64,000 bases of DNA from the sequence record LR756508.1; one strand, given 5' to 3'. Positions 7,042 to 51,862 of the stretch are shown here, piece by piece. Position 1 is the stretch's first letter; each line of letters opens with the position of its first letter. The notes beneath the pieces were generated by a model. The model saw only the letters and a program-made list of their open reading frames with translations. It was not told the DNA's origin and did no database searches. The position numbers were made by a program, and so were the translations under genes.

Positions 7042-7854
7042 ATGAGATTTAAAAAGCTTTTGGAAGAAAAAAATCAAGGAAAGCTGTTCGAAAAGCTGCA
7101 TGAGGAGTTGAACTCGGGAAAGTGGATCGTGCGTGAAACAAAGCTTTACAGAGGAACCGATAGGCCAACCAAAAAAATGAAAGTAAAAGACGTGAGGAGT
7201 AGGTCTGGTAGGGAGCCAAAAGACACTGATAACATTGTTGATGAGCTAATTCACCTCTTTTACGACAAGTGTTTTTCGGAGTATCCGAATCGAAGGGAAA
7301 GCGTTTTCGCATCAACCTCCGCTGGAAGCGCCGAATTTTATGGGAAACCTCATCTCGCCTTCCCTCATAAAAATGCCAAAATAAGTGGCAGAAACGCCGA
7401 TCCACACAACGTTTTTGAAGCTCTATCTAGTAAAATAAAAAGAATTAAAAAAATTTGGCTTAAAAACAAGGAACGGATAAACAAAGTTATAGGAGAATTT
7501 CCAAAAAAAGACGCCGATAAAATTCGAGATCTATTTTTTCTTCTTTCTGGTTATGACCTGAGCTTAATTCAAAATGAAAGTATTACATGTCCTGAAAAAC
7601 TGGTTAAGTATACCGACCAGCTCCATAAAAAATATGAAGACTTTAGTCCACAGAGCTTGCCTTTTAAAAAGTTTCTCGGTCTTTTAGACGGAGTTGTGTA
7701 CTCGATCAATAGATATTTCGAAAATTTGGAGCTTGGATATCCGAAACCAGACGGCTTTTATGGCGAAATAATGATTGATGGAAAGTACCTGCAAGTTGAA
7801 AAAAACGTGTTTGATGAGTATTATGCTAACTTTGATCATAACCTGGACTGGTAA
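7042..7854 (+). CDS. ADP-ribosyltransferase-like paralog 1 with N-terminal leader
   Basis: MRFKKLLEE; LYRG; SVFASTS..AEFYG; GEIMI. Confidence 0.6.
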   Translation: MRFKKLLEEKNQGKLFEKLHEELNSGKWIVRETKLYRGTDRPTKKMKVKDVRSRSGREPKDTDNIVDELIHLFYDKCFSEYPNRRESVFASTSAGSAEFYGKPHLAFPHKNAKISGRNADPHNVFEALSSKIKRIKKIWLKNKERINKVIGEFPKKDADKIRDLFFLLSGYDLSLIQNESITCPEKLVKYTDQLHKKYEDFSPQSLPFKKFLGLLDGVVYSINRYFENLELGYPKPDGFYGEIMIDGKYLQVEKNVFDEYYANFDHNLDW

Positions 7855-7885
7855 TCCTCTGCGTATATTTCAAATCTGACGCTAA

Positions 7886-8734
7886 ATGAAACTTAAGAGA
7901 GTTCTTCAAAGCTTATTATCAGAATCCAGAACTAAAAGGTTGGAAGGAGTTTATGGGGCTGAAGACCTTTACAACAGGAAAGATTTCTCCTCCTATAGTT
8001 TTGCGAATAGTCAGATTTTTCGGGGAATAGAAGGTGGGCCTGGTTATGGATATATTGATCCATCCAATTTTAAAAGAGAGTCTGCCCACACAAAGAACTA
8101 TTATACTCTAATAATCGATAATTCTGATAATTGGAGTGAATATCCAGACAGATCAAAAAGTATAGTCTGCACTACTGGTCAACGTGCAGCCAGTAACTAT
8201 GGAAATACCTACCTTGTAGTTCCTGAAGGATCTCCAAAAGTTGGTATTGCCCCTGCCAGAGACATCTGGTTTTCTTTTGACCGAAAGTTGAGAGAAATTA
8301 ACTTATCGACACTTTCGGTGCTTAACGAAGTAATCCACGACCTGTCTCTTGTTATTTTAGACGAGAGTCCTCCAGAAAAAAATTACCAAAAGTTTAAGAG
8401 TTTCATTCAAAAACTGGGGAAGGTAGGAGAAGAAAACGGAGAATTTGAGCACATAGCTAAAAATGACACTTCCAAAAACTCAGAGACGTACATGAAAACA
8501 GCAGGCTCTTTCTGTAGGGCCTATATTAAACAGGAAAGGTCTCTATATCAATTTCTAGAGTATATTCTTGATCCGAATGAAAACGCATTTGAAGTTAAAA
8601 AGTATACAAATCCTTTTGAGGTAGAAAAAAATCTAGAAGTTTGGATGACTAGCCCCGCCTTGCTAATCCGCAAAGACAAGTGGGACGAGTTTTTTCAAAA
8701 AGTCATTGGAATGGATACCCCCTTCAAAAAGTAA
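7886..8734 (+). CDS. ADP-ribosyltransferase-like paralog 2 with N-terminal leader
   Basis: MKLKRVLQSLLSE; IFRG; YPDRSKSIVCTTG..ASNYG; LEVWM. Confidence 0.6.
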   Translation: MKLKRVLQSLLSESRTKRLEGVYGAEDLYNRKDFSSYSFANSQIFRGIEGGPGYGYIDPSNFKRESAHTKNYYTLIIDNSDNWSEYPDRSKSIVCTTGQRAASNYGNTYLVVPEGSPKVGIAPARDIWFSFDRKLREINLSTLSVLNEVIHDLSLVILDESPPEKNYQKFKSFIQKLGKVGEENGEFEHIAKNDTSKNSETYMKTAGSFCRAYIKQERSLYQFLEYILDPNENAFEVKKYTNPFEVEKNLEVWMTSPALLIRKDKWDEFFQKVIGMDTPFKK

Positions 8735-8742
8735 ATGGTTTC

Positions 8743-9819
8743 ATGGGTGATAAACTTGAAAATGCAACTTTTCTTTGTGGAGATGCAGAGGACAAGTTGT
8801 CAGAGTTACAATCTAATTCTGTTCAAGTTTGTATTACATCTCCACCTTACTGGGGACTGCGAGATTATGGCGAAAGAGATCAACTTGGCTTAGAAGACTC
8901 TCCCCATGAATACGTTAAAAACTTAACTCAAGTATTTCGTGAAGTGAAGAGGGTACTACATCCATCAGGCACTTTCTGGCTTAATATCGGAGATAGCTAC
9001 AATGGAAGCGGTGGAACAGGCACCAAGCCGAATTTAAGACCAAACCAGAAAGAGCACGGGGCACCAGCAACAAGATTTGATGGGCTAAAACCAAAAGACA
9101 AGACGCTAGTTCCATCGAGAGTAGCCCTGGCCTTACAAGAGGATGGATGGTGGGTGAGGCAAGAAATAATCTTCGCCAAAGGCATTAGTTTCTGCGAAGA
9201 TTATAGTGGGACGTGTATGCCAGAGTCAGTATCTGACCGCTGTTCAACCTCTCACGAAAAGTTTTACCACCTGTCGAAATCTAAAAACTACTTTTATGAT
9301 ATAGATGCTGTAAGAGAGTCCTATCAAAGCAAAAAAAGAGATATTGATAGAGCACACGTAACAGGAAGAGGGAAGCAGGACTATTCAACGGCTTTCTTAG
9401 GCTCAGATCAAAGAGATAAAAGTGGGGGATATCCCTTCACAAATGGAGGCAGAAATTTAAGAAGCGTTTGGACTATAAACCCTTCGCAGTTCAAAGGTGC
9501 TCATTTTGCCGTGTTTCCTTTAGATCTTGTTGAACCGCCAGTAAAAGCTGGAAGTCCTTCTGGTGGCGTCTGCACCGAGTGCAAAATTCCCTACAGAAAA
9601 GTAGACGGCAAGTGGGCAAAAAGATGTGATTGCGAAACGGATGAGACAGAGCCTGCTACTATTTTAGATCCTTTCATGGGAGCAGGAACAACTGGAATTG
9701 CAGCCTTAAAACATGGAAGAAGGTTTGTCGGAATAGATATAAACGATGAATACATCGAAATGGCAAAAAACCGAATACGAAAACATGAAGAGGTTCCGTT
9801 AAGTCACGACTGGTGGTAG
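8743..9819 (+). CDS. Beta-class N4-C/N6-A DNA methyltransferase
   Basis: CITSPPYWGLRDY (motif IV), HFAVFPLDLV, ILDPFMGAGTTG (motif I). ATG 8743 is a more plausible start than 8680. Confidence 0.9.
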   Translation: MGDKLENATFLCGDAEDKLSELQSNSVQVCITSPPYWGLRDYGERDQLGLEDSPHEYVKNLTQVFREVKRVLHPSGTFWLNIGDSYNGSGGTGTKPNLRPNQKEHGAPATRFDGLKPKDKTLVPSRVALALQEDGWWVRQEIIFAKGISFCEDYSGTCMPESVSDRCSTSHEKFYHLSKSKNYFYDIDAVRESYQSKKRDIDRAHVTGRGKQDYSTAFLGSDQRDKSGGYPFTNGGRNLRSVWTINPSQFKGAHFAVFPLDLVEPPVKAGSPSGGVCTECKIPYRKVDGKWAKRCDCETDETEPATILDPFMGAGTTGIAALKHGRRFVGIDINDEYIEMAKNRIRKHEEVPLSHDWW

Positions 9820-9836
9820 AAACGAGATAAAGTGAA

Positions 9837-10688
9837 ATGAGGCTAAAGAAAATATTAAAAGAAAAGGTTGAAGATCAAGAAGCTCAAGAGCTTTTTAATG
9901 AGCTTGATGAATATCTTTTGACCGAAAACAAACTTTACCGAGGAATGAGAACTAATGTAGATACTTATATCCAGCGAACAGTAAGAGAGGGAAGGGTTCC
10001 TAATGCCACTACCAAAGCCGCTGACGTCTTTCTCAACACGTTACTTTCCAACCTTTTTCCAAGGCACCCAAAAAGAAGTAAATCTACCTTTGGAACTCCG
10101 AGTAAATCTTTCGCCACCAGCTTTGGAACCACTATCAATATGATCGTTCCAAAAAAGGATGCCAAAGTAAAGTTTTATGAAAGCGACACGTGGCCGAGAT
10201 ACACGTCCTCAATTGGAAATGAAATAAATGCTGGAACTCGAAAACTCAATAAACTCAGCGTCTCATTGGAAAACCAAACTCTTGGAAGAAAGTTTGAGAA
10301 ACTAAGAGAAAATTACAATAAAGAAATTGTTGATTTCATATATGGAGTATGGGAGATGAAAAGCTATGGAGACTCTGGAATTTTTGAAGATGTGATAAGT
10401 CAGTTTTCAAAACTCTCGACGCTATATGGAAATCTGAAATCTTTCTTCGAAACACAAAACGCCGAAGAAAACATAGAAGAAGAGATAATCTTTGCAGCAA
10501 AAAAATATTTACATGCTCTGAACACATTTAAAGAGTATGTGTCCAACGGACACGACGAGTACCACACAAATACTCGCGAAGTTATCGTGGAAGGAGATCA
10601 TCTCATTATTAATCCAAATTGGTTTGATAAGCACTTCGAGTGGTCCAAAGGTAATATTCAATTTAAACCAAAAACAAATGGAGAGTAG
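9837..10688 (+). CDS. ADP-ribosyltransferase-like paralog 3 with N-terminal leader
   Basis: MRLKKILKE; LYRG; HPKRSKSTFGTPS..ATSFG; REVIV. Confidence 0.6.
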   Translation: MRLKKILKEKVEDQEAQELFNELDEYLLTENKLYRGMRTNVDTYIQRTVREGRVPNATTKAADVFLNTLLSNLFPRHPKRSKSTFGTPSKSFATSFGTTINMIVPKKDAKVKFYESDTWPRYTSSIGNEINAGTRKLNKLSVSLENQTLGRKFEKLRENYNKEIVDFIYGVWEMKSYGDSGIFEDVISQFSKLSTLYGNLKSFFETQNAEENIEEEIIFAAKKYLHALNTFKEYVSNGHDEYHTNTREVIVEGDHLIINPNWFDKHFEWSKGNIQFKPKTNGE

Positions 10689-10828
10689 TGGTAATCAGTG
10701 ACTTAAATGTTTGAGTCAGATAGATTCGATATTAAACATGTTTAAATACCTTAGATCAATTAAATAAGGCCACAATAGATGTTATATAGGACAGCATGAG
10801 TGAGTTTTTTCACTATATGAGATAATAT

Positions 10829-11347
10829 ATGGCATCTGAAGACAACAGAAAGTTTGAGTATGGATGTGTGATGGCCAACCTCAAAATTCCATACTGGAAT
10901 TCATTTACAAACAGGATCGAAGAGCAGGACTTATATTATAAGCCTGACGATGATAGTTTTGGCCGGGAAGAAGATCCTCACGTCACTATCTTGTTTGGCC
11001 TGCACGAGCACATTCCCGATTCTTATATCGCCAAGGCTTGCAGTAAAATCAAGCCAATTCCAATTCAACTTAGAAGCATCTCAACATTTACCGATAACGA
11101 AGATTTCGATGTCCTAAAGTTTGACGTGAAGTCTTCATATTTGCACTTTTTAAACGAGGCGTTCAAAAAATTTCCATATACTTCTTCATATCCCTCTTAC
11201 AATCCACATCTCACAGTAGCCTACTTAAAAAAGGAAAAGGCTGAAAAATATTTCTGGCTATTCAACGAAATGCCAACTCAAGAGTTTTTGAGTGAAGAGA
11301 TTGTGTACTCGAAAACTTCCGGAGAAAAGCTTCGTTTCGATCTCTAA
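10829..11347 (+). CDS. 2H phosphoesterase (2'-5' RNA ligase/Acb1-like fold)
   Basis: Two HxT motifs: PHVTILFG and PHLTVAY. Confidence 0.8.
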   Translation: MASEDNRKFEYGCVMANLKIPYWNSFTNRIEEQDLYYKPDDDSFGREEDPHVTILFGLHEHIPDSYIAKACSKIKPIPIQLRSISTFTDNEDFDVLKFDVKSSYLHFLNEAFKKFPYTSSYPSYNPHLTVAYLKKEKAEKYFWLFNEMPTQEFLSEEIVYSKTSGEKLRFDL

Positions 11348-11362
11348 AGTCTATCCTGGTCG

Positions 11363-14300
11363 ATGTATAAAAACATCTATATCGAAGATCGCTATACCGA
11401 TCAACCTACCGTTCATATATGGGATTCTCAGAAAGGTCACATTGAGTTCGAATATAATAAAAAAATGTACGTCCGGTCACCCGATGGCGATTATACATCT
11501 CTTTATGGAGACCCTCTAGCAGAAGTTCCAGCCTCAAAAATCGATTATAATACGAAACAAAGGCTGCAGGATCGGTACGGGGAAGGTGAAGCTATATTTC
11601 AATCAGATCTTCAACTTGAAACTCAAATCTTATCGGAGGTCTACAGGGACGCAGAAGAGCCAAGTGAAGATGTAGAGACCCTCTTTTTCGATATTGAGGT
11701 TTCTATGGAGGGAGAACTCCCAAAGATTAGCACTGCGAATAACCCCATCACTTCAATTGCCTACACAGTCCGATCTACAGGCGAATCTAAAGTCTTAATC
11801 TGGGACCCCGAAAACGAAACAGAAAACTTCGAGCAGGAGGGAGTAGAGGTCATACCTTTTGAGGGGGAAGACCAGCTTCTTTATTCTTTTGTTGAAGAAT
11901 GGAGAGATATTGATCCTGATATAATTTCGGGATATAATGTCGATGGTTTTGATGTCCCTTATCTTTACAGGAGAATCAGTAAGGTAATTAACAACGACTT
12001 TGCAGATCGCTTGTCTCCGATTGAAGAAGTAGATTTTCGAAAAAATCGTGGAGAACGTGGCGAAGGTCGGTTTTTTATTGCTGGCGTCAGCTCTCTCGAT
12101 TACTACTCGCTTTATAAAAACTTTACTTTTACTGAGCTCGACTCATATTCTCTCGATAATGTGTCTAAAGAGGAATTAGATCGGGGGAAGGTGGAGTATA
12201 TGGGAAAAGAAATTGAGACCGAGGATGGAGAAACGGTTGTAATCGAAGATCTTGATGATTTGAAAGAATACGACCCTGAAGCCTTCGTTCGATATAATAT
12301 CGAAGATGCATGGCTTGTTAGAGACTTAGACGATAAATTTGACTTCATTGAACTGGCCAGAAAAATTTGTCACTTAGGGCACGTTCCCTATGAGGACATT
12401 TATATGAGTTCAAGATATATCGACGGCGCGTTTATCACGAGGCTTAATAAACGTGGAATTATTGCACCAAACGTTCACAGAATTGAGGATTTTGAATTGG
12501 ATGGATTTCATTCGGTTGGATCAAAAGAGATTAAGCTAAAAAATGAAATCCATCCTGACATTCCAAGAAAAGGAACAATTGGAATCCGAGTTTCCTCAGC
12601 CACGAAGAAAAAGGTAGATTATGATCGGATCGAGAAAGATAAGTTTATTTTAGAAGAACCAGTTGATTTTGAGGTTTTTGAAGATTATTCGATTGGACTT
12701 GAGTTCGAAGGTGCTTACGTAAAAGAACCTGATCCTGGCCTTTACGAATGGATTTACGATCTGGACTTAACCTCCATGTATCCTTCTATTATTATGTCCT
12801 TGAATATTTCTCCCGAAACGTTGGTTGGAAAAATTTATGACTGGAGCGCTGAAGGGTTTATTAAAGGTGAAAAAGAAACGTATAAAGTTTGGATTTTTGA
12901 TGAAGAAGAGTTTTCGGAATTTACTAATTCCGAGTTGGAGAAATTTCTGGAAGAAGGAGAATTTAGTGTAGCCGCAAATGGAGCTTTTTATAGAAATGAT
13001 AAGAAAGGTATTATCCCTGAGGTTCTTGAAGAGTGGTTTACGCTTCGGCAAGAATACAAGTCTACCAGAAACGAGTGGCGTGAAAAAGAAGGAGAAAAGG
13101 CTGAAGAAAAAGCTGAATACTACGATAAACTCCAACACGTCCATAAAATTTTGATTAACTGTTTCACTCCAGGTCATGAAATCGTAACGAAAGATGGAGT
13201 CAAAAATATTGAAGACGTAGAAGAAGGAGATTTTGTTTATTCAGTAGATCCCGAAACTGGCAACGTTCAGTATAAACCAGTTTCAAGAACCTACAGGCAA
13301 GAAAATTATGACGGAAATGTTGTTAACTTCCAGAATTCTTTCGTAGATTTCTCGGTTACGCCAAACCACGATATGGTTTATGGAGGTGACGAGATCTATA
13401 AAGAAAAAGCAGGAAACTGCCTAAATGATTCTGACGAGAGGCGAATGTGGTCACATGGAGCCCTAAGAAAAGACTCGCCAGTTCACGTCAGCCTCAAAAA
13501 TTTCTGTGATCGTTTGGGTGTCGATTACGAATATGACGTTCAAAAAGGCGTAATCAAAAGTTCAGGTACCCAGTCAACCTGGGTTAAAAATACATACCTG
13601 CTTCCTAACTTTCTAAAACTCTGTGGGCAGTATGTGTTTGGAGCGCAGTCTGAACCTGATGGCACCGATAGTGAATCTTACTCTATAGCTACGGAAAACA
13701 ATAAAAAGATTGAGGTCGAAAACACTATACTCCACAAGATACTCAAAGAAGATTTTGGAGAAGAAGCTCAAGATAAAAGAATTCCAGGTTGGATTTGGGA
13801 GTTGGATGGAGTCATTCTAAAAAACCTCTTGGAAACGATCTTTTCTGATGTGGAAAATAGAGACAGCTACCAGTATAAAACTGACCATGAAGAATTCGCG
13901 CAGGATGTAGTAAGACTGGCTTACCATTGTGGCTACAGGGCCGTTGTTGAGAGTCCTGCTAATGAAAATATTAGCTATTATGAAGTGTCAATTTACGAGG
14001 AAGATGGAGAAGTTCCTCCCATTTTAAAAGATAAGGACAGGGAATTAGAAGAGTATGATGGTCCTATCGTTTGTGTTGAGGTGGAAGACAATCATACGGT
14101 CCTGGCAGGAAAAAATGGTAAGTTCAACTTGATTGGCCAGTCGGTTTATGGTATTATGGGGTTGCCAAATTTTCGATTCTACAATGTATATAATGCGTCC
14201 GCCACTACACTTACTGGACAAGCAATTATCAAGTACACACAGAGAATGGGAGATCATTATTATAATAAAAAAATTGGAAAAGACGTTGAGTTTGAAGATG

Positions 14301-14416
14301 AATCTGAGATGAACATTGACTTTAATGAAACCTATTTAGTAATGCGAGATGGGATGAAGATGAAAGTGAAAGGAAAAGAACTTCAAGAGGAAGACGAGCT
14401 TGTAATTGAAGACTAA
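11363..14416 (+). CDS. polB: Family B DNA polymerase, N-terminal part (3'-5' exonuclease, motifs A and B), intein-containing
   Basis: FFDIEV, YNVDGFDVPYL, YNIEDA, DLDLTSMYPSII, KILIN|intein|SVYG. The ORF stops before motif C. Confidence 0.92.
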   Translation: MYKNIYIEDRYTDQPTVHIWDSQKGHIEFEYNKKMYVRSPDGDYTSLYGDPLAEVPASKIDYNTKQRLQDRYGEGEAIFQSDLQLETQILSEVYRDAEEPSEDVETLFFDIEVSMEGELPKISTANNPITSIAYTVRSTGESKVLIWDPENETENFEQEGVEVIPFEGEDQLLYSFVEEWRDIDPDIISGYNVDGFDVPYLYRRISKVINNDFADRLSPIEEVDFRKNRGERGEGRFFIAGVSSLDYYSLYKNFTFTELDSYSLDNVSKEELDRGKVEYMGKEIETEDGETVVIEDLDDLKEYDPEAFVRYNIEDAWLVRDLDDKFDFIELARKICHLGHVPYEDIYMSSRYIDGAFITRLNKRGIIAPNVHRIEDFELDGFHSVGSKEIKLKNEIHPDIPRKGTIGIRVSSATKKKVDYDRIEKDKFILEEPVDFEVFEDYSIGLEFEGAYVKEPDPGLYEWIYDLDLTSMYPSIIMSLNISPETLVGKIYDWSAEGFIKGEKETYKVWIFDEEEFSEFTNSELEKFLEEGEFSVAANGAFYRNDKKGIIPEVLEEWFTLRQEYKSTRNEWREKEGEKAEEKAEYYDKLQHVHKILINCFTPGHEIVTKDGVKNIEDVEEGDFVYSVDPETGNVQYKPVSRTYRQENYDGNVVNFQNSFVDFSVTPNHDMVYGGDEIYKEKAGNCLNDSDERRMWSHGALRKDSPVHVSLKNFCDRLGVDYEYDVQKGVIKSSGTQSTWVKNTYLLPNFLKLCGQYVFGAQSEPDGTDSESYSIATENNKKIEVENTILHKILKEDFGEEAQDKRIPGWIWELDGVILKNLLETIFSDVENRDSYQYKTDHEEFAQDVVRLAYHCGYRAVVESPANENISYYEVSIYEEDGEVPPILKDKDRELEEYDGPIVCVEVEDNHTVLAGKNGKFNLIGQSVYGIMGLPNFRFYNVYNASATTLTGQAIIKYTQRMGDHYYNKKIGKDVEFEDESEMNIDFNETYLVMRDGMKMKVKGKELQEEDELVIED
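13160..14140 (+). mobile_element. Intein 1 in PolB motif B (327 aa, Cys1, ends Gly-Gln, +1 Ser)
   Basis: KILIN|CFTPGHEIVTKDG...VTPNH...VCVEVEDNHTVLAGKNGKFNLIGQ|SVYG; eroded LAGLIDADG-like centre. Confidence 0.88.
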
Positions 14417-14474
14417 AAAAACCAACTACTAAAGTTTTCAGTTCATGGTGGTTTTTAACTTTTAGAGATGAGAA

Positions 14475-15287
14475 ATGAAACTAAAAAAAGTATATGAAAA
14501 CTTAATTTCCGAGGGAAGAACCGAAAAGCTTTCAAAGAAAAAGCTAATTGACATATACAATGAAAAAGTGGGGATTGAGCCTCACAAACTACCTTCCATT
14601 TATCGTGGAAAGAAGTCCAAAATGAAATATGGGTTCGTAGAACCAAGAAAATTTGAAAGAAGTTCTGCATATACCCTGAACTATTACACTCTCATTATTG
14701 ATAATAGTAAGCCCTGGAGTGATTATCCCGAGAGGTCGAAGTCTTTAGTCTGCACCACATCAAAAACGAAAGCTTCCGACTATGGAAGTGTGTATCGCGT
14801 TTTTCCGTTCCCAGGTGCTGAGATTGGAATAACACCAGAGAGTGATATCTGGGATTCTTTTTCTCAATTAGAAAACCAAGTTGATATTGATGATCTTCAA
14901 CACTTCAACTATACACTTAGAAAATTAGGCGAGTCATGCATTGGAAGAAAAACAAGTGATGAAAGTTGGAGTAAGTTTAAAAAAGACTTGAGCCAAATCG
15001 CTAACTGTGACAGTTTTAGTCAGTTGTATCAGACCGGAGAATATCCGCCAGAAATTGATCAATTCATAACTCCTTTTAAATTAAACATAAAAAGACTGGC
15101 TGACTACTTTTTTCCAAACTACACATCTTTTGTAGAAATGTTCGAAAATTTGCTTCATCCCGATAAAAACAATTTTGAGAAGAAGAAATTTGATTCGAAC
15201 GTTACTCTTCCTAAAGATATAGAAGCTTGGACTGATTCCCCTACTTTACTGGTTCGCGATGGCCATTTTCCTAAAGAGCTGGTTTAA
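14475..15287 (+). CDS. ADP-ribosyltransferase-like paralog 4 with N-terminal leader
   Basis: MKLKKVYENLISE; IYRG; YPERSKSLVCTTS..ASDYG; IEAWT. Confidence 0.6.
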   Translation: MKLKKVYENLISEGRTEKLSKKKLIDIYNEKVGIEPHKLPSIYRGKKSKMKYGFVEPRKFERSSAYTLNYYTLIIDNSKPWSDYPERSKSLVCTTSKTKASDYGSVYRVFPFPGAEIGITPESDIWDSFSQLENQVDIDDLQHFNYTLRKLGESCIGRKTSDESWSKFKKDLSQIANCDSFSQLYQTGEYPPEIDQFITPFKLNIKRLADYFFPNYTSFVEMFENLLHPDKNNFEKKKFDSNVTLPKDIEAWTDSPTLLVRDGHFPKELV

Positions 15288-15329
15288 ATTTGTTTGTTGT
15301 TAAAACTTTAATCTTAAAGAGAACATGAA

Positions 15330-16085
15330 ATGAAGCTAAAAAATCTGTTGTCCGAAGACTTAAGAGGCCAAAAATTAAGTTTAGAAAAAACAAAAGAGTT
15401 ATACCGTGAAAACTGTCAGGAGCACGGTTTTAACAACACTCAGATCTATCGAGGCGTTTCTGGACAACCCAAGCTCTATTTCTTAAATCCATCGAGAAAT
15501 AAACGAAGTTCTCCTTCGAGCGATGGTTATTACAGCCTCATCATGGATAACTCTGGATTTTGGAGTGGATATCCAAAGAGAAGTAAAAGTATTATCTGCT
15601 CGACTAGTCAGTCTTATGCTTCGAGTTTTGGAACGCTATATTTAGTTATTCCTTACGACAATTCTAATTTTGGGGTTTGTCCAAATGATGACATTTGGAG
15701 GTCATTTGACTTCTCTGAGTTTGAAGAAATTGATGACTTAATGAATTTTGACAATCATTTGAACAAAATTTCTGAAAAAATTTTGAATGAGAAATTGAAC
15801 AGTACCAATTTCAATAAATTCAAAGGTCAAATAATAGAAATAGGCAGGAAGATCGTAAATAATAAAGGATTGTCTTCAACATCTTTTCTATTAGAGAAGT
15901 ATTTGAATAGCACTGCAGACGACCTGCTTTTTTATATTGAGCGGCTTCTTGATCCCGAAAAAAATGGATTCAAGACTAAAGAATATACTTCAAAGTTTAA
16001 TCTTTTTGGAAACAGGGAAGTATGGTCCGATGGAGAGTTTCTGTTGATCCAGCATGATCTAATTGATTCTTTTAAGAAAAAATAG
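15330..16085 (+). CDS. ADP-ribosyltransferase-like paralog 5 with N-terminal leader
   Basis: MKLKNLLSE; IYRG; YPKRSKSIICSTS..ASSFG; REVWS. Confidence 0.6.
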   Translation: MKLKNLLSEDLRGQKLSLEKTKELYRENCQEHGFNNTQIYRGVSGQPKLYFLNPSRNKRSSPSSDGYYSLIMDNSGFWSGYPKRSKSIICSTSQSYASSFGTLYLVIPYDNSNFGVCPNDDIWRSFDFSEFEEIDDLMNFDNHLNKISEKILNEKLNSTNFNKFKGQIIEIGRKIVNNKGLSSTSFLLEKYLNSTADDLLFYIERLLDPEKNGFKTKEYTSKFNLFGNREVWSDGEFLLIQHDLIDSFKKK

Positions 16086-16090
16086 AAAAA

Positions 16091-16544: not shown

Positions 16545-17345
16545 GTGAGATTTAAAGACTTACTTCAGGAAGTTTCGGCTCCTTCAATTGAAAGTTTATC
16601 GGCTCAAGACTTTGCGGAGATTTATGCCGAGGCTTGGTATAGAAATTGGAGGCGAGAAGTAAAAAGGCTTGGAGATGATTATCCAAAAGTAAAAAATATT
16701 AGCCACCTGTTTGATCAGCTTGAAAATGAAGTTCATGCAGCAGCCATCCAAAGTGGCCACATAGGTTTTCTTTACGAATGTCTTAAGAATGGACGAATAA
16801 CAAAGAAGATAGCCTCTGGCCAGAGTGGCTTTGATAGTCCTGGAAAAAGAGAACCAGAAGTTGAGTTTAGAGGTGAAAAGTGCGCCTCTTACCAAGGAGG
16901 GTGTTACTATAATGCCTTGGATTTCATGAACAGAACTGAAAGAGATGACGTAGAACTGGCCTATGGACTAATGGTTGGTGAAAGGTTTTTAGAAGGAGTA
17001 TACAAGTCAATCGAGTCTTCGCTCGATTCTAATAATAGTAATTTGAATACAGGACTAACAGAGCACTCTTTTGTGCTGGTAAATGGAAATAAGATATTTG
17101 ATCCTACCCTCCCCCACTCCGAGTTAAAGAGTGAAACTTATGCTTACGAAACTGTTCCTTCTTCGGTTTGGAGAAAGTTTCCACATGATTTTGAAGACAA
17201 AAACTATTCAGCCAACGAATTTGCCGACTATATTGAGGTCGAGTTAGAAAATCATGTGGGTAGAGCTGGAATTAAAAAAAGGATCGAAGAGTATCACGAA
17301 AACTTCACTTCTCAAAAAAAACATTTTTCCTATAGCCAATCTTAA
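16545..17345 (+). CDS. Putative transglutaminase/papain-like (Cys-His-Asp) enzyme with N-terminal leader
   Basis: GTG start, MRFKDLLQE; GGCYYNA ... EHSFVL ... IFDPT in triad order. Confidence 0.5.
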   Translation: MRFKDLLQEVSAPSIESLSAQDFAEIYAEAWYRNWRREVKRLGDDYPKVKNISHLFDQLENEVHAAAIQSGHIGFLYECLKNGRITKKIASGQSGFDSPGKREPEVEFRGEKCASYQGGCYYNALDFMNRTERDDVELAYGLMVGERFLEGVYKSIESSLDSNNSNLNTGLTEHSFVLVNGNKIFDPTLPHSELKSETYAYETVPSSVWRKFPHDFEDKNYSANEFADYIEVELENHVGRAGIKKRIEEYHENFTSQKKHFSYSQS

Positions 17346-17421: not shown

Positions 17422-19287
17422 ATGAAAACAAAGAAAATTAAAAATATTCCCGAATCAAAACTGAATCAGGACGGAGAAAAAGAATATTGCGTATACACCG
17501 ATTCCTGCCCCGGTTTTGAGCCTATAGTTGTTAAAAGTAAAGAAAGTGGGTTGATTGACGTAAGACTCATATCAGACCTTGAAAACCGTTGGCAGGAGTA
17601 TCTTGTTTGGAGCGATGAAGGTTTTGTAAGAATTAATAATTTTATTAAAAAACCGCTTCGAAAAAACCTCTTCACTGTCAGGACGCAAAGAGGTGTTGTT
17701 CATGTCACTGAGGACCATAGCCTAATCAAATCTTCGGGAGATCCAATAAAACCAAATAAAGTTGAAGTAGGAAACACGGAGCTTTTACACAAAAAAATCG
17801 GCAATTTTGAGCGGAAGACTGAATTTTCAAAAAAACGTGCTTGGTTTTTCGGATTTTTTACTGCAGTAGAAAATAGTAGATGCTCTAATTCCAAAGAAGA
17901 AAATAAAAAGTTAGATGAGGCTTTAAAACAAAAAATTAATGTATCAGCAGAAACCAAAAGGATAGTAGAGTCCGAAAGTTTCACAAAATCTCCTGTATAT
18001 CCAAGATCAGGTTTTGGAAGAGACTTTCCCTCTGGATCTGTAAATCTGTGTTATACAGAAGACAAAAAACTGAAAGTTCCGCCTCAAATTTTAAATGCCA
18101 AAAGAAGTGAAACTATCGAAGCATTTTTGGAAGGCTACAGTGATGGCGACGATCAGATTAATCGAAATTCTTCTAAAAGAAGGTACTGGTTTGATTCTCC
18201 CGTGTTAGCCCAAGGAATTAACCTTTTATTTAATAAATTAGATCAATTAATGGAGGTTGATTATCTAAGAAGTGATGAAAAAGAAAGTATTGGGTTAAGC
18301 AGCCAGGATTCTTGGAAAGAAGAATCAGAAAAAGTAGAGCAAATTGAAGAGTTTGAATACAAGGGAGATTATGTTTACGACTTGGAAACCGAAAACCATC
18401 ATTTTGCCTGTGGAGTAGGCTCCATTGTTGTCCATAACACCGACTCGGTGTTTTATCCAGCAGAGCCGATTGTTGAAAAGCAGATGCCGAATGTAGACAC
18501 CGAAGATGAAGAGGGTATGACCGATGCAATTTTAGAGATTGCAGATGAGGTCGAGGATTATCTTAACGCCTGCTATAACCATTTCGCTAGAGAATTAGCT
18601 CACATTCCTGAAGATAAAAAGCACTGGTTTGAAATTAAACAGGAGCTTGTAGCCAAGTCTGGCCTTTGGGTTCGGAAAAAAAGATATGCCCAGTGGATTA
18701 TCAACGACGAAGGTGATCCAACAGACGAGTTGGACGTGAAAGGGCTTGATATTATCCGCTCCGATTTCCCTACTGCCTTTCGAGAGCTTCTAGAAGATGT
18801 TATTGTTTCGATCCTTAAAGGCTCGGATAAAAAAGAAATAGACAAAAAGGTTCTCGATTTCCGAGAGAATCTTAAAAATTTGAATCTTGAGGACGTGGCG
18901 AGGCCAACTAAAGTAGGAGACCTTGAAGACTACCATACCGATGATTTTGGAAGAACTCAAAAAGGTACTCCCGCTCACTTTGCCGGAGCGTTAAATTACA
19001 ACGACTTGATCAGGCACTTTGGACTTGAAAAAGAAGTTTCTCCTATCAAAAGCGGATCAAAGATCAAGTGGGTTTATTTAAATAAAAACAATCTTGGCTT
19101 CGAGAAGATGGCTTTCAAAGGTCAAGGAAATCCTAAGAAGATAATAGAGTTTTTAAAAGACAATACTGACTTCGTAAAACTTTACGAAAAAAGCCTCAAG
19201 AGTAAAGTTGAAGCTGTTTATGAAGCTATGGACTGGAACTTTCCATCCGAAAACAAACGGCAGGCTCAGAAGTTTTTCAGCATGTGA
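17422..19287 (+). CDS. polB: Family B DNA polymerase, C-terminal part (motif C, thumb), intein-containing
   Basis: YCVYTD|intein|TDSVF gives YTDTDS after splicing; KKRYA, VKGLDIIRSD; C-terminal QAQKFFSM clamp-binding-like tail. Confidence 0.92.
   Translation: MKTKKIKNIPESKLNQDGEKEYCVYTDSCPGFEPIVVKSKESGLIDVRLISDLENRWQEYLVWSDEGFVRINNFIKKPLRKNLFTVRTQRGVVHVTEDHSLIKSSGDPIKPNKVEVGNTELLHKKIGNFERKTEFSKKRAWFFGFFTAVENSRCSNSKEENKKLDEALKQKINVSAETKRIVESESFTKSPVYPRSGFGRDFPSGSVNLCYTEDKKLKVPPQILNAKRSETIEAFLEGYSDGDDQINRNSSKRRYWFDSPVLAQGINLLFNKLDQLMEVDYLRSDEKESIGLSSQDSWKEESEKVEQIEEFEYKGDYVYDLETENHHFACGVGSIVVHNTDSVFYPAEPIVEKQMPNVDTEDEEGMTDAILEIADEVEDYLNACYNHFARELAHIPEDKKHWFEIKQELVAKSGLWVRKKRYAQWIINDEGDPTDELDVKGLDIIRSDFPTAFRELLEDVIVSILKGSDKKEIDKKVLDFRENLKNLNLEDVARPTKVGDLEDYHTDDFGRTQKGTPAHFAGALNYNDLIRHFGLEKEVSPIKSGSKIKWVYLNKNNLGFEKMAFKGQGNPKKIIEFLKDNTDFVKLYEKSLKSKVEAVYEAMDWNFPSENKRQAQKFFSM
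17503..18438 (+). mobile_element. Intein 2 in PolB motif C (312 aa, Ser1, His-Asn end, +1 Thr)
   Basis: YTD|SCPGFEPIVV...VTEDHSL...AFLEGYSDGD...VYDLETENHHF..IVVHN|TDS. Confidence 0.92.
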
Positions 19288-37289: not shown

Positions 37290-37336
37290 AATGCCATTTC
37301 AATTCTCCACACTCTGAATACAGTTTTCGTTTTCTG

Positions 37337-39602: not shown

Positions 39603-39608
39603 AAAAAT

Positions 39609-40763
39609 ATGAACTCAAAAACGTCTCTACATCTTGCCGATTCCAAAAAGAAGCTATTGAAATTCGACCAGAATAGTTTTCACTCCTGCGTGTGTGATCC
39701 GCCCTATGAGCTTGGAATCATGAACAAAAGCTGGGACGAAAGCGGCATCGCTTTTGATAGCGAATATTGGAGTAGAGTTTATCGGGTTTTAAAACCTGGC
39801 GCTCACCTACTTGCTTTTGGTGGTAACAGAACTCATCACAGGCTTATAGTTGCAATTGAAGACGCTGGTTTTGAAATTAGAGATTGCCTCATGTGGGTTT
39901 ATTCGAATGGTCTCAGCAATTCTCATGACGTTTCAAAAGCTATTGATAAGCACCACGGAAAAAGCGAAGAGCGTGAAGTTGTAGACACTTACACGAAAAC
40001 CGAGTCGTATACAAAAGAATATTCTGGAGAGGCAAGGGGCGAAACCCCCTGGGGGCAGGCAGTGATTGAAGTTACAGCTCCCGCTACCCAGGACGCAGAG
40101 AAGTGGAATGGATATGGAACCAAGCTGAAACCAGCTTACGAGCCGATTGTTCTTGCCCGAAAACCGATCTCAGAAAAAAATATAGCGAAAAATGTATTGA
40201 GGCATTCTGCTGGAGCCATAAACATTGGCGACTGCAAAATTGGAAACGAGAGGCTTCCTGCAGTTGATCGTGGCAATTCGAAAAATACTGATTTCCAAAG
40301 CGGTGGCGATACGCCAAAGCGTGAAGGGAGGTGGCCTACAAACTTTATTATAGATGAGGAGGTAGCAGGCGAGTTGGACTGGCAGAGTAGAGACCGAAAT
40401 GCTTCTCGCTTTTTCTATTCGCCTAAAGCTCAACAGGACGAAAGAAACATTGGTACTGCAGAAAATAACCATTCTACTGTAAAGCCTATTGAGCTTATGG
40501 CGTATCTTGTTAGGCTTGTTACTCCTCCTGAAGGTGAAGTTTTAGACCCATTTATGGGAAGTGGGAGCACTGGAGTAGCTGCGATTTTGGAAAACGTGGA
40601 CTTCACGGGCATTGAACTCCGAGAGGAAAGTTTTGAAATAGCAGAAGACCGAATTCAGTATACAAAAAGAAATTACGTAAAAGTGAGAGATCTTATTTTT
40701 GATGATCCTCATAACGAAGAAACAAACAAAGAAAAGTCTGCCATGAATCACGGGTTCTGGTAA
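39609..40763 (+). CDS. Beta-class DNA methyltransferase D
   Basis: VCDPPYELG, HSTVKP, VLDPFMGSGSTG. Confidence 0.92.
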   Translation: MNSKTSLHLADSKKKLLKFDQNSFHSCVCDPPYELGIMNKSWDESGIAFDSEYWSRVYRVLKPGAHLLAFGGNRTHHRLIVAIEDAGFEIRDCLMWVYSNGLSNSHDVSKAIDKHHGKSEEREVVDTYTKTESYTKEYSGEARGETPWGQAVIEVTAPATQDAEKWNGYGTKLKPAYEPIVLARKPISEKNIAKNVLRHSAGAINIGDCKIGNERLPAVDRGNSKNTDFQSGGDTPKREGRWPTNFIIDEEVAGELDWQSRDRNASRFFYSPKAQQDERNIGTAENNHSTVKPIELMAYLVRLVTPPEGEVLDPFMGSGSTGVAAILENVDFTGIELREESFEIAEDRIQYTKRNYVKVRDLIFDDPHNEETNKEKSAMNHGFW

Positions 40764-43812: not shown

Positions 43813-43826
43813 ACTAAAGCAACAAA

Positions 43827-45390: not shown

Positions 45391-45421
45391 AAATCTGCCT
45401 TAACAAAAGATCACATCTGAT

Positions 45422-46742: not shown

Positions 46743-46756
46743 AACAGAAATTTGCT

Positions 46757-47864: not shown

Positions 47865-47881
47865 AAGATAGATAAAATTTA

Positions 47882-48184: not shown

Positions 48185-48190
48185 AGTGTT

Positions 48191-48469
48191 ATGCTTATTG
48201 AGTCGAAAGAAGACTTTAAAACTCGCTTAGTCGAAGACTTAAGCGAGGAGGGGTATGCCGTTGAGTTCGGTGAAACCGAGATTAAAGAAGATCCAGCCAC
48301 TGCCGTTCCTGTTGAGTTTCAAAAAGCTAAAGTTTTAGATGGTGAAGGCAGTGAGGTTAGTTTTCGCCTGAACACTAATAACTTTCAAGTTGATGGTGAG
48401 CACTACAATAACTTAATCGAAAGTTTTTTGGAGCAGGTCGAGGAAAAATTTAAAACTGAGGACGAATGA
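48191..48469 (+). CDS. Hypothetical acidic protein
   Basis: 92 aa ORF. Confidence 0.55.
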   Translation: MLIESKEDFKTRLVEDLSEEGYAVEFGETEIKEDPATAVPVEFQKAKVLDGEGSEVSFRLNTNNFQVDGEHYNNLIESFLEQVEEKFKTEDE

Positions 48470-49176
48470 GATCATATTTTAAACTTGCTAATGAACTTCT
48501 GCCTATCAATGAAGACGTCAAGCAGAACAGAGAGTATAGAGAATTTGCTCGGAAGATTTATCAAAAGTTAAAGTCTGCCTTAGAAGACGGTAAAAATAAC
48601 ATATTAAACAAAGCCAAAAATGGTTATTTTGTCGACGGAAATGTAATAGGGCACAGCGCCTTTATATTTTACTTTGCTCCTAAAGGCCACACAAGTGGGT
48701 ACAAGAAGCACGAGGACTACCACATGATTAAAATTCCTGTTCTTCCCGAAGACGGATCTCCTGAAAATATTGAGTTTCGCCTCCATGAAATGAAAAAAAC
48801 TATTGTTCACGAGATCATTCATGCTTTAGATAATATGAGATTTGATAAAGACATGGAGGATTTCTACTCAAGTGAAGACCTGGGAACAAAAGAGTACTTC
48901 AACAAACCCAATGAACTGAATGCCTACTACCAAGGAGCTGTAAATGAGCTTGAGGAGTTTATCGAAGACATGTCTCTTCACGAGTTTGAAGCGTATCAAG
49001 ACTTCTTCGAGGACTTCCAGAGCTTTAAAGACTGGACATTTGAGCTGTTTTTTGAAGAGAAGTTTTTAGAAGCGATCACCAGAAAGAATAAAAGAAAAAT
49101 TGAGAAAAGACTTAGCAAGTATTATCAAAAAATCGAAAAAGAAGGCAAATTAAGCAAAAATCGTTATGAGCAGTAA
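48466..49176 (+). CDS. Zincin-like metalloprotease paralog 1
   Basis: IVHEIIHALD ... YFNKPNELNAY. Confidence 0.65.
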   Translation: MRSYFKLANELLPINEDVKQNREYREFARKIYQKLKSALEDGKNNILNKAKNGYFVDGNVIGHSAFIFYFAPKGHTSGYKKHEDYHMIKIPVLPEDGSPENIEFRLHEMKKTIVHEIIHALDNMRFDKDMEDFYSSEDLGTKEYFNKPNELNAYYQGAVNELEEFIEDMSLHEFEAYQDFFEDFQSFKDWTFELFFEEKFLEAITRKNKRKIEKRLSKYYQKIEKEGKLSKNRYEQ

Positions 49177-49438
49177 ATATGAACTAAAAGAAGGGACTGA
49201 AGTTCGGGTTCCAAATCTTATTTTTGAAGACAAAGATTCAAGTGACGTAGAGGACGTCATGTTTTTTGAAGTAAGAATTGACCGAACTGAAAAGAACTAT
49301 GTTTACCTCTCGACGCTTGGAGATAATAACCATTACGATGGAGAACGATTCCCTCGCGATCTTGTTCAAGCTTGGCAGTATAAACCTTACTTTAATGTGG
49401 GTTCGTATGAAGAAAAGGATGTCGAGCAGAAAGTTTGA
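49166..49438 (+). CDS. Hypothetical protein
   Basis: 90 aa ORF. Confidence 0.55.
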   Translation: MSSKYELKEGTEVRVPNLIFEDKDSSDVEDVMFFEVRIDRTEKNYVYLSTLGDNNHYDGERFPRDLVQAWQYKPYFNVGSYEEKDVEQKV

Positions 49439-49443
49439 ATTTG

Positions 49444-50262
49444 ATGCTTTTCAAAGACCTCCTTACTGAATCTAAGGGCAGTAAATTTCGATCATTGATA
49501 AAACTCCTGAAGAAAGACGGGTGGATTCTCCAAAAACCATTTTTGTATCGAGGAAGAAAAGGTGAGCCTGAGTTTGCCTATGAGGTTCGAGAAAAAAGAG
49601 AAGAGCGAGAGCCGAAAGACACTGCCATAAAAACAAACAATATAGTTAGCTGCCTGCACGATGTTTTTCTGCCAGAATTTCCTCACAGGGGGCGCTCGGT
49701 TTTCGCAACTTACGACCGAACAGTTACAAGGGATTACGGTTCGTATGACATGCTTGTAGTTCCTCATAAGACCGCTAAAATCTCCTGGTCGGAAGCAGAT
49801 GCCTGGTGGTCGTTTTTCAAAGAAATGGAGTCAATGATTGATTCACTTTCAACAAAAAATCCTGTAGAATGTTTGAACCGGAGCAAAGATAAATCCGAAC
49901 ATCACCGGATGGTTTTTGATTTAATCAAGGCACTCGTGAAAGCATCTACTGCCAAAAGCTGCTCGGAACTAAAAAAATACAAAGAAGAATACGGAAACCC
50001 GTTCGTGAACTCTACGGCGTTTATGACTCTTCGGAATAAACTTGAAAATGAACCGAGCACTTGTTTTTTAAATTCTCAAAAAGTGGTTTCAAATCTTGAA
50101 AAGTATTACAGAAACCTCCACCTCGGATATCCAAACAATAAAGAAAGTTTTTATGAAACTGCGATAGAAGGAAGATATATTTATATTAATTTGAAGACGT
50201 TTCTTGATCATCATAAAGAAAAGTTTGAAAGAGAGTTTGGATTTGTTTTTGAAGGCAGATAA
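49444..50262 (+). CDS. ADP-ribosyltransferase-like paralog 6 with N-terminal leader
   Basis: MLFKDLLTE; LYRG; REPKDT; FPHRGRSVFATY..DYG; YETAI. Confidence 0.6.
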   Translation: MLFKDLLTESKGSKFRSLIKLLKKDGWILQKPFLYRGRKGEPEFAYEVREKREEREPKDTAIKTNNIVSCLHDVFLPEFPHRGRSVFATYDRTVTRDYGSYDMLVVPHKTAKISWSEADAWWSFFKEMESMIDSLSTKNPVECLNRSKDKSEHHRMVFDLIKALVKASTAKSCSELKKYKEEYGNPFVNSTAFMTLRNKLENEPSTCFLNSQKVVSNLEKYYRNLHLGYPNNKESFYETAIEGRYIYINLKTFLDHHKEKFEREFGFVFEGR

Positions 50263-50271
50263 AGATTTGCT

Positions 50272-51021
50272 ATGAAACTATCGAACCTACTATTTGAAGA
50301 TGCAGAGCTAGATCGTGAGTTTCGAAAGAAAGCCCGAAAAATTTATGAAGATTTACTATCTTACCTGGAAGACGAGGGAGAAAACATCTCTTTTCAACAA
50401 GGAATAGGTTTATCGGTTTCTTTAGATGAGTTTACTGATCCTGTGCGAGAAAAAAATCCCTTAAAAGTAGTCTGGCTTCCATCGAAATCTCGTTTTGGGG
50501 ACGCCTCGTATTTTAAAAAAGGAAGTGGGGTAATGAGAAGTCCTTACCTTGCCTTGAGGGGACTAGATAAAAGCGACTTAAACCTTCCACCTGACGAGAG
50601 GAAAGAAAAACTTATTAGGGACTTAAAAAGCAACTCCGACGTGTTTATCCACGAACTTATTCACTACTTTGATGATCTCAGGTCTGATAAAGACCTACAA
50701 AACGTGCTTTCTTTTGATAAGAGCGACTACGACACTGAAGACTATTATTCTGATCCTGTTGAGGTTAATGCCTTTTTTCAAGCTGCCGTTTCAGAACTGG
50801 AAGATTTTATTGAAGAGGAAGGCCATTTTAAGTTCATGATGGAAACCTGTTGGAAAGAGGACTTTAAAAAGTTCAACGAATGGATGTTTGAAAATGTAAT
50901 TCCAGATGAACTTGAAGAAAATATTTCGAAAGACCAGAAAAAAAGGCTCGTAAACAGGCTTTATGGGTTTTGGGAGCAGCTTGAAGAACGCCACGAAAAA
51001 TTGAAAAACAATGAAACTTAA
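50272..51021 (+). CDS. Zincin-like metalloprotease paralog 2 with N-terminal leader
   Basis: MKLSNLLFE; FIHELIHYFD ... YYSDPVEVNAF. Confidence 0.65.
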   Translation: MKLSNLLFEDAELDREFRKKARKIYEDLLSYLEDEGENISFQQGIGLSVSLDEFTDPVREKNPLKVVWLPSKSRFGDASYFKKGSGVMRSPYLALRGLDKSDLNLPPDERKEKLIRDLKSNSDVFIHELIHYFDDLRSDKDLQNVLSFDKSDYDTEDYYSDPVEVNAFFQAAVSELEDFIEEEGHFKFMMETCWKEDFKKFNEWMFENVIPDELEENISKDQKKRLVNRLYGFWEQLEERHEKLKNNET

Positions 51022-51862
51022 AGATTTACTTTTTGAACAGTCAAATCCAAAAGAGTTAGCTGAAAAATTTATTAAAAAGGTCGAAAGTGGCGAATGGACC
51101 ATCCCCCAGAAGAAAGGAATCGACCTGTGGCGTGGAACGAATAGAGAGGTAATGGTTGGGGTAAAAGAGGAGTATACCAAAAACAGGAAGCCGATGAACA
51201 CCTCTGCCGACACTCAACAAATGTTGGATATAGTTGCTAGAAGGCAGATGGCCGAATGGCCGCTTCGAACTTTTTCACGGTTTGCTTCTACACGTCTTAG
51301 TTTCGTCCAGTCTTATGGCACGCCTCATTATGTATTCCCCCGTAAAAATTCGAAAATTGCTTCATTTGAAAGAGACGCCTTCATAACTTATTTTGGCAGG
51401 TATAACGAAAATCCCGAGCACTTTGTTAAAAAGTTTAGAAAGTTTTTTGATAAAACGGAGAAGGACTGGAATTATATCCAAGAAAAACTTGGAGAAGAGA
51501 TAGCGGATTTTCTTTCCGCTTATTTCTTAGCTGTTGATGGTGGCGATTTTAATCACTTCAAAAAACTAGCGAGTAAGTATGAAATTAGTAAACACGTTGA
51601 AGTGTTCGAGAGAGCTCATAATCTTCTAGCCGAAGGTGACGTAAAAATGAGCGTTTTTGGTTCAAGTCACCTCTATGATGCAGTTATTACGGGTAAGAAA
51701 TTAGTAGAAAACATATCTACCTATTTTGAAGAAGGAAAGCGGGGAATAGTAAAAGAATCGGAGGAGCTGATTATTCAAGGCGACCTGCTTCATCTTAAAA
51801 AGTCTTTCGCCGATGAATACCTCAAATTCGAAAACAATAGCTGGCAGATTGATATTTTTTAA
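51011..51862 (+). CDS. ADP-ribosyltransferase-like paralog 7 with N-terminal leader
   Basis: MKLKDLLFE; LWRG; WPLRTFSRFAST..SYG; SEELII. Confidence 0.6.
   Translation: MKLKDLLFEQSNPKELAEKFIKKVESGEWTIPQKKGIDLWRGTNREVMVGVKEEYTKNRKPMNTSADTQQMLDIVARRQMAEWPLRTFSRFASTRLSFVQSYGTPHYVFPRKNSKIASFERDAFITYFGRYNENPEHFVKKFRKFFDKTEKDWNYIQEKLGEEIADFLSAYFLAVDGGDFNHFKKLASKYEISKHVEVFERAHNLLAEGDVKMSVFGSSHLYDAVITGKKLVENISTYFEEGKRGIVKESEELIIQGDLLHLKKSFADEYLKFENNSWQIDIF

Follow-up and report, generated by a model that had tools for sequence, protein, structure and literature searches.

A short leader shared by unrelated proteins of an uncultured huge phage as a probable capsid-targeting sequence

The leader-bearing genes of the window and the genome

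The unannotated "uncultured phage" assembly LR756508.1 (484,177 bp) contains genes whose products open with nearly the same short peptide, here called the leader. Ten of these genes lie in the stretch that we analysed (the window), which spans 64 kb and is identical in sequence to positions 248,001–312,000 of the record. The leader has nine residues with the consensus M-[KR]-[LF]-K-x-[LI]-L-x-E and is sometimes offset or a few residues longer. We regard it as a likely capsid-targeting sequence (CTS), or propeptide, of the type known from phage T4. The ten genes are listed below with window positions, strand, product, and leader, and with the basis of each assignment in brackets.

7042–7854, +, main family, 270 aa; leader MRFKKLLEE at nt 7042–7068 (translation, paralogy, alignment A1)
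7886–8734, +, main family, 282 aa; extended leader MKLKRVLQSLLSE at nt 7886–7924 (translation, paralogy, alignment A1)
9837–10688, +, main family, 283 aa; leader MRLKKILKE at nt 9837–9863 (translation, paralogy, alignment A1)
14475–15287, +, main family, 270 aa; extended leader MKLKKVYENLISE at nt 14475–14513 (translation, paralogy, alignment A1)
15330–16085, +, main family, 251 aa; leader MKLKNLLSE at nt 15330–15356 (translation, paralogy, alignment A1)
16545–17345, +, singleton body, 266 aa, GTG start; leader (M)RFKDLLQE at nt 16545–16571 (translation, four-sequence alignment A4)
48466–49176, +, HExxH family, 236 aa; divergent longer leader MRSYFKLANELLPINE at nt 48466–48513 (translation, alignment A3)
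49444–50262, +, main family, 272 aa; leader MLFKDLLTE at nt 49444–49470 (translation, paralogy, alignment A1)
50272–51021, +, HExxH family, 249 aa; leader MKLSNLLFE at nt 50272–50298 (translation, paralogy, alignment A3)
51011–51862, +, main family, 283 aa; leader MKLKDLLFE at nt 51011–51037 (translation, paralogy, alignment A1)

An earlier note on this DNA had reported these ten N-termini, and all of them translate exactly as written there. Its division of the bodies into seven, two, and one was recovered by BLAST, with 7042, 7886, 9837, 14475, 15330, 49444, and 51011 in family 1, 48466 and 50272 in family 2, and 16545 as a singleton. For the open reading frames (ORFs) at 7042 and 49444, TTG alternatives exist one and three codons upstream, respectively, and the ATG starts yield the canonical leader. 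The extended leaders of 7886 and 14475 result from a four-residue insertion inside the leader (alignment A1); in 7886, the leader is followed by an SRT/GRT motif that is typical of the metagenomic majority subfamily. In the divergent leader of 48466, I-N-E-D is aligned to L-F-E-D of its paralog 50272 (alignment A3). The suggestion that the tagged proteins are less acidic than the replication core holds only marginally (median isoelectric point 7.7 vs 5.4; Mann-Whitney p=0.047).

The count of ten given earlier proved too low for the phage as a whole: scanning all predicted N-termini with a position-specific scoring matrix (PSSM) yielded about 37 leader-bearing genes, which is about 5% of all genes. 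The matrix was trained on these same N-termini, and internal windows are the meaningful control. A score of at least 14 was reached by 27 of the 795 predicted N-termini and by one of 105,398 internal 8-residue windows; at a score of at least 10, the numbers were 31 and 11. The distance of the leader from the start codon varies from 0 to 3 residues, as in MVKFKSLLFE, MAQLKKLLVE, and MERFKNLLLE. At its conserved Leu, Lys, and Glu positions, synonymous codons are spread, with Leu encoded by six codons and Glu by GAA (15 times) or GAG (12 times), and no common DNA motif was found upstream of the tagged genes. This combination of varied codon choice and absence of an upstream motif indicates that selection on the leader acts on the peptide. 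An intergenic 8-mer, TCTATTTA(A), is 13-fold enriched in intergenic DNA, typically 40–60 nt upstream of starts, and is a candidate promoter element that is not specific to tagged genes; examples lie upstream of record positions 173722, 253829 (window 5829), and 339711.

The peptide is kept far beyond this phage. A hidden Markov model of the main family, run against 1.84 billion proteins, matched 5,445 representative clusters at E<=1e-3, and the same leader opens nearly all of the best 150 of these. In 103 diverse homologs, the leader Glu is at least 90% conserved, which places it in the same class as the presumed catalytic residues R44, R87, S90, and E250. Among HExxH homologs, the length of the N-terminal segment varies from 9 to 21 residues and (L/I)-x-E-D is invariant, and in the four sequences of the 16545 family, M1, K4, L7, and E9 are invariant. 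A syntenic copy of 49444 in contig L017 opens with MRLKDLLIE. Using tblastn with the 14475 protein, homologs were found in the cultured jumbo phages Atu_ph07, RsoM2USA, and SCTP-2. The published proteomics of RsoM2USA, in which only about ten gel bands were identified, is uninformative.

Two irregular situations were noted in the genome-wide scan. At record 180899–181604 (L004 ~33,899–34,604), a main-family gene appears to be disrupted, with the leader and N-terminal part on an ORF of 168 aa and a match to the family C-terminus on another of 55 aa; it is probably a frameshifted or decaying copy. At record 220727 (L005:24727–25581) and 449541 (L010:8541–9452), leader-like strings (MMKKNSSKKLQRIILEE and MDYSNFAKDLFTE) are displaced from the annotated start; both proteins are paralogs of tagged proteins, the second with a Zeta_toxin domain, and the displacement may reflect longer propeptides or mis-set starts.

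Gene content identifies the window as a replication and nucleotide-metabolism region, encoding the ribonucleotide reductase large subunit, dUTPase, and dCMP deaminase; all its genes, the ten leader-bearing ones included, are on the plus strand. The family-B DNA polymerase is encoded in two pieces (11363–14416 and 17422–19287) about 3 kb apart, and the second of these genes carries an intein, with an intein-splicing domain at its start. Four genes lie between the polymerase halves, namely the tagged main-family genes 14475 and 15330, the dCMP deaminase gene, and the tagged gene 16545. The polymerase of Atu_ph07 is likewise encoded by two genes. Elsewhere in the window, there is a TnpB/Cas12f-like gene at 22138–23352 (OrfB_IS605 plus Cas12f1-like TNB), belonging to a family with ten copies across the phage genome, and there are six paralogous N6/N4 DNA methylase genes (8680–9819, 35436–40763, 51869–54220). 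Several of the methylase paralogs align in two or three blocks with long inserts between, and they have a short C-terminal piece that is common to other genes too. A 2H-phosphoesterase family protein is encoded at 10829–11347, between the tagged gene 9837 and the polymerase, and gives a borderline match to the anti-CBASS protein Acb1 (27.9 bits vs a cutoff of 27).

The protein bodies behind the leader

To group the bodies independently of the leader, the first 14 residues were removed from the 37 proteins before BLAST. The bodies fall into ten BLAST-distinct groups: a superfamily of 26 members, which is the largest paralog family of LR756508.1, the HExxH pair, a pair of 175 and 200 aa, and seven singletons. 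When the main and HExxH families were compared with hhalign, only the ten leader columns aligned, and the HExxH and 16545 families gave no alignment at all. One of the singletons, encoded outside the window at record 330232, is a Zeta_toxin/AAA_33 P-loop kinase, with significant Pfam matches (Zeta_toxin 35.6 bits, cutoff 22.3; AAA_33 37.6 bits, cutoff 27) and a Walker A motif, GGPASGKT. The earlier view of the leader as a portable tag that goes beyond paralogy is borne out by these ten distinct bodies, the leader-only match, and the kinase.

The main-family proteins comprise about 260 residues. Alignment A1 shows invariant R37, G38, R57, R84, S87, and E242, and in an alignment of 103 sequences, R44, R87, S90, and E250 are invariant or near-invariant, in this order. 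None of the 103 members has a Pfam match, and a profile search among PDB sequences revealed no relatives. The AlphaFold2 model of the 7042 protein is of reasonable quality (predicted local distance difference test score, pLDDT, 77; predicted template modelling score 0.75). Searching the PDB with this model using Foldseek gave nothing significant (best E 0.48), with a single match to an ADP-ribosyltransferase (ART) at a probability of 0.09, and a Foldseek search of BFVD returned matches only to uncharacterised jumbo-phage proteins, next to a PARP-domain match with E 0.77. Comparison with T4 ModA and ModB by hhalign aligned only (Y/W)RG, at a probability of 3–4%, and comparison with Alt aligned nothing. 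None of these searches (Pfam with the ten window proteins and with the 103 homologs, PDB profile, Foldseek against PDB and BFVD, hhalign against ModA, ModB, and Alt) gave a significant match, and we consider the assignment of the main family as an ADP-ribosyltransferase unsupported. The order R...R-x-x-S...E is compatible with the label "ART-like" that had been attached to the family, with no fold match behind it.

The sole hints of ART-fold cargo come from other proteins. Weak matches to the ART-fold family Tpt1/KptA in Pfam, below the cutoff (6e-5 and 0.05), were found on leader-bearing or leader-like proteins that have an (F/Y)HVT motif:

Record 213967 (L005:17967–18398), (F/Y)HVT, Tpt1/KptA-like protein, weak Pfam match
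Record 191924 (L004:44924–45673), (F/Y)HVT, Tpt1/KptA-like protein, weak Pfam match
Record 223149 (L005:27149–28408), (F/Y)HVT, Tpt1/KptA-like protein, weak Pfam match

Two other folds had been proposed for the window proteins. In the HExxH family, labeled a zincin in the earlier note, H127, E128, and H131 are invariant in six homologs (alignment A3); the match to Pfam Peptidase_M76 is below threshold (17.5 bits, cutoff 25.2), and a PDB profile search with the family found no match. On another phage contig, the gene for a more distant HExxH homolog, P0158, immediately follows a neck gene resembling T4 gp13 and has a sheath gene nearby, a location that fits a virion-associated role. For the 16545 protein, several Cys, His, and Asp residues are conserved in the four-sequence alignment A4. 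For its putative "Cys-His-Asp" fold, no Pfam or PDB relative was found, and AlphaFold2 gave no usable model from four sequences (pLDDT only 35). Judged from sequence, the putative cargo is thus diverse, comprising the 26-member family with enzyme-like invariant Arg/Arg/Ser/Glu residues, two HExxH proteins, the Zeta-toxin-like kinase, Tpt1-like proteins, and several orphans.

Head genes of the phage and virion proteins of a cultured relative

To identify head genes, T4 proteins were translated from the T4 record and used in phmmer searches of LR756508.1. This revealed the gp23-type major capsid protein at record 171904 (E 2.5e-37), the gp20 portal, two gp18 sheath paralogs, and the gp17 terminase. 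PHROGs scans of 20 large ORFs yielded only a baseplate wedge protein, the large terminase, and one "virion structural protein." The gp21-type prohead protease that the earlier note's proposal calls for is present, at record 156480–158204 (L004:9480–11201; phmmer E 2e-18). It belongs to Pfam Peptidase_S77 (5.4e-26; 91.7 bits vs a cutoff of 27), its motifs ALGELDHP and GISSRGLGS align to T4 gp21, and a LAGLIDADG intein interrupts its gene immediately behind the ELDHPD motif (C...GN/S). In the capsid protein, LLE-53 and LKE-62 lie close to the residue that corresponds to Glu-65, the cut site of T4 gp23. Just upstream of the capsid gene, a very acidic 576-aa protein that starts with ...ELLKE/A and contains 22 [LI]-x-E sites is a candidate scaffold. 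The third gene downstream of the capsid gene opens the first cluster of tagged genes.

The T4 sequences themselves served as a control. Hydrophobic-hydrophobic-x-Glu occurs at residues 6–10 of ipII, ipIII, gp24, gp22, gp21, and Inh, and Alt has ITE-6; the known gp21 substrates of T4 hence share the signature of the huge-phage leader and its distance from Met-1. The leader PSSM does not rank T4 IPII and IPIII high (score 0.5), and the likeness between leader and CTS is one of pattern and position, not of sequence identity. Internal proteins of T-even phages are diverse defence proteins that have only the CTS in common, and in T4 the cargo that carries it (the internal proteins and Alt) is ejected from the head and then targets the host (PMC3012670). 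The CTS and processing by gp21 are described in PMC3012670 and PMC5694885.

A second class of leader was observed on small proteins (57–240 aa), with the pattern M-x(3-6)-[KR]-L-[RK]-x-[IV]-[IV]-[KR]-E-E-[IVL], for example MKIQEQKLRGIIKEEIKK. In strict form, this pattern has 13 matches in the first 30 residues of proteins and 3 in 119,342 internal windows, and 6 of the 13 leaders lie between the portal and capsid genes. Three small genes on a distant phage contig (L016:18649–19814), adjacent to its sheath gene, have this leader too. The positions in the record are:

Record 151–163 kb (L004 ~4,000–16,000), second-class leaders
Record 189.6k, 194.3k, 194.8k, 218.1k, 219.9k, 401.7k, and 440.3k, second-class leaders

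The cultured relative Atu_ph07, an Agrobacterium phage, allows comparison with a published virion proteome, obtained by electrospray-ionization tandem mass spectrometry (ESI-MS/MS; Attai et al. 2018, PMC6102473). Its main-family homologs form a tandem array whose members open with M[RK]WxQL[TN]E (e.g., MRWEQLTE). All ORF starts of its whole genome were screened with a generic leader pattern. All 19 annotated leader-bearing genes are found in the virion table, against a background of 140 of 714 genes (Fisher p ~1e-14). Genes were matched to the table by calculated mass, with agreement to 0.01 kDa and consistent gene order, and a mass would match by chance in about 9% of cases. The proteins concerned are:

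Tagged virion proteins of Atu_ph07 (ESI-MS/MS table): gp43, gp53–63, gp381, gp407, gp408, gp482, gp548, gp561, gp672

Among these, gp53–gp62 are main-family homologs with an equivalent leader, gp53 being a fusion of a main-family domain to a Zeta-toxin domain. Seven tagged virion proteins (gp43, gp63, gp381, gp482, gp548, gp561, and gp672) have bodies from outside the family. For gp407, the annotated start lies 11 codons upstream of the leader Met. Pattern matches without a counterpart in the virion table are limited to internal start codons within the topoisomerase, ribonucleotide reductase, and clamp-loader genes (three in all), a weak match on a 68-aa ORF start (the annotated gene has 58 aa), and one unannotated 92-aa ORF. 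The gp21 homolog of Atu_ph07, gp204, is itself in the virion list. The paper describes a cluster of unexplained or hypothetical "structural" proteins in CDS (coding sequences) 31–76, and in the passages and tables examined the shared leader is neither mentioned nor tied to gp204.

Probable capsid targeting, its alternatives, and what it would mean

Taken together, we think it probable that the leader is a T4-type capsid-targeting sequence or propeptide, because the tag is real, specific to N-termini, portable, and conserved, ends in the expected protease motif, and predicts virion proteins of Atu_ph07 without exception. By analogy with T4, we infer the following course of events. During head assembly, the leader would dock its protein to the prohead's scaffolding core, after which the gp21-type serine protease (Peptidase_S77) would cut after the Glu of L-x-E. 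The mature protein would remain inside the DNA-filled head, would probably exit with the DNA at infection, and may then act on the host. Of the earlier proposal that the head is preloaded with host-modifying enzymes, it is the targeting to the capsid that gains support, from the T4-like head genes, the protease, and the 19 of 19 tagged virion proteins.

The alternative that survives best accepts targeting to the head and sees the cargo as structural, either filling the head as inner-body or core-like material, which phiKZ-like phages exemplify, or serving head completion, with no injected arsenal. The 26-member family has no assignable enzymatic family, giant phages typically encode large sets of paralogous head proteins that undergo processing and have no known activity (PMC5694885), and ejection is deduced by analogy; on the other hand, the main family has enzyme-like invariant R, R, S, and E, other tagged bodies are of enzyme types (a Zeta-toxin-type kinase, an invariant HExxH, weak Tpt1/KptA matches), and the CTS-bearing cargo of T4 is ejected and acts on the host (PMC3012670). 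We consider a purely structural cargo possible but rather unlikely.

Several observations weigh against capsid targeting itself, and some of these would favor a second alternative, in which the shared N-terminus reflects paralogy only, as the first helix of one expanded family plus chance look-alikes. As to the virion data, they come from a relative and not from the uncultured LR756508.1 itself. The Atu_ph07 particles were purified with polyethylene glycol only and 140 proteins are listed, so that some contamination is possible, and the table gives no peptide positions and speaks to residence in the virion, not to removal of the leader. In the window, the ten tagged genes are dispersed among replication and nucleotide-metabolism genes, outside the head module, and a search for a late-promoter motif common to tagged genes found none. 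As to paralogy, 26 of the 37 tagged proteins belong to one superfamily, so the raw count largely reflects it. The AlphaFold2 model of the main family places the leader at the start of a long helix (residues 2–23), although pLDDT is below 50 for residues 2–7. In addition, hhalign detects a weak similarity (probability 43%) between the main and 16545 families that covers the leader and the next helix, some 25 residues past the leader, and does not cover the conserved core residues; the transferable unit may thus be longer than nine residues in some proteins. Paralogy alone nevertheless seems very unlikely in view of the nine further BLAST-distinct bodies that are tagged, including the Zeta_toxin/AAA_33 kinase and the HExxH family with its leader-only match, the near absence of the motif from internal windows, and the seven non-family tagged bodies of Atu_ph07, all of which are virion proteins.

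A third alternative holds that the leader signals another fate (membrane, secretion, or Clp-type degradation) and that detection in virions is incidental. Such a reading could draw on the short, amphipathic, and charged nature of the peptide and on the several Clp components encoded by Atu_ph07. It appears highly improbable, given that the leader lacks the hydrophobic core of Sec/Tat signals, that all 19 tagged Atu_ph07 proteins are in the virion list, and that the last residues of the leader form the cleavage motif expected for the phage's own head protease, a motif also present in the capsid protein and the scaffold candidate. Finally, an mRNA or translation feature (an A-rich "downstream box"), suggested by codons 2–4 that are often AAA/AGA/AAG-rich, is hardly credible, since codon choice is free at the conserved Leu and Glu, the leader does not keep a fixed distance from the start codon, and it is the peptide, not the DNA, that is kept across very distant phages (MRWEQLTE in Atu_ph07, with metagenomic homologs varying alike).

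Read as a capsid-targeting sequence, the leader resembles the T4 CTS (of IPI, IPII, IPIII, and Alt, processed by gp21) in being a short N-terminal peptide on unrelated bodies that ends in (L/I)-x-E at about residue 9–10. The two phages also have in common a gp21-family (Peptidase_S77) protease, a T4-like capsid protein with an N-terminal propeptide, and cargo genes scattered in plastic regions. They differ in the leader itself, which is of the MKLKDLLFE type here and of a type (MKTYQEFIAE) not ranked high by the PSSM in T4, and in number, with about 37 tagged proteins here and about 4–5 cargo proteins in T4. The predicted cargo families also differ and are mostly uncharacterised here, and the protease gene is interrupted by an intein. 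Phage P1 provides another example of anti-host proteins that are packaged in the head and delivered with the DNA, the Dar proteins, which act in defence against restriction; their incorporation is hierarchical and protein-dependent and is not known to use a uniform cleavable 9-mer. Capsid targeting is reportedly also a subject of a paper on P1 assembly (PMC9024508).

The phiKZ-like giant phages are similar in having dozens of head proteins and paralog families, and in having a gp21-related protease (phiKZ gp175, SPN3US gp245) that cuts after Glu and N-terminal propeptides common to paralogs (PMC5694885). Their proteases belong to MEROPS family S80, with (S/A/G)-x-E sites and often long propeptides, whereas the phage studied here has an S77 protease, L-x-E, and a nine-residue leader. 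For phiKZ-like phages, no tag is described that is both short and uniform on bodies unrelated to each other (PMC5694885). The principle is thus already known from T4, and what is new here is the sequence of the tag, its scale (about 5% of genes), the cargo families, including a very large one without a Pfam match, and the practical use of N-termini to predict what uncultured huge phages package.

Giant phages have hundreds of genes with unknown function, and capsid-borne proteins are known only for a few cultured examples. With the N-terminal signature, candidates for packaging, and possibly for injection, can be picked from the sequences of uncultured huge phages alone, because it marks virion proteins in 19 of 19 cases in a cultured relative and is conserved over thousands of metagenomic clusters. 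It explains a block of "unexplained structural proteins" of Atu_ph07, and it defines the leader-bearing main family as a large protein family without a Pfam match. The leader could also serve as a portable tag that brings foreign proteins into large capsids, a use to which the T4 CTS is already put. More speculatively, and with considerable doubt on our part, huge T4-related phages might sort dozens of proteins into the capsid by a sequence-addressed code of two or more leader classes (an MKLKDLLFE type on enzyme-like proteins of about 260 aa and a KLRxIIREE type on small proteins clustered in the head module), and the main family, with its 5,445 clusters, might then form a new superfamily of enzymes that are injected, diversify rapidly, and modify the host, and that are possibly related to ARTs. 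If this packaging code were real, the injected "effectorome" of uncultured giant phages would become readable from metagenomes.

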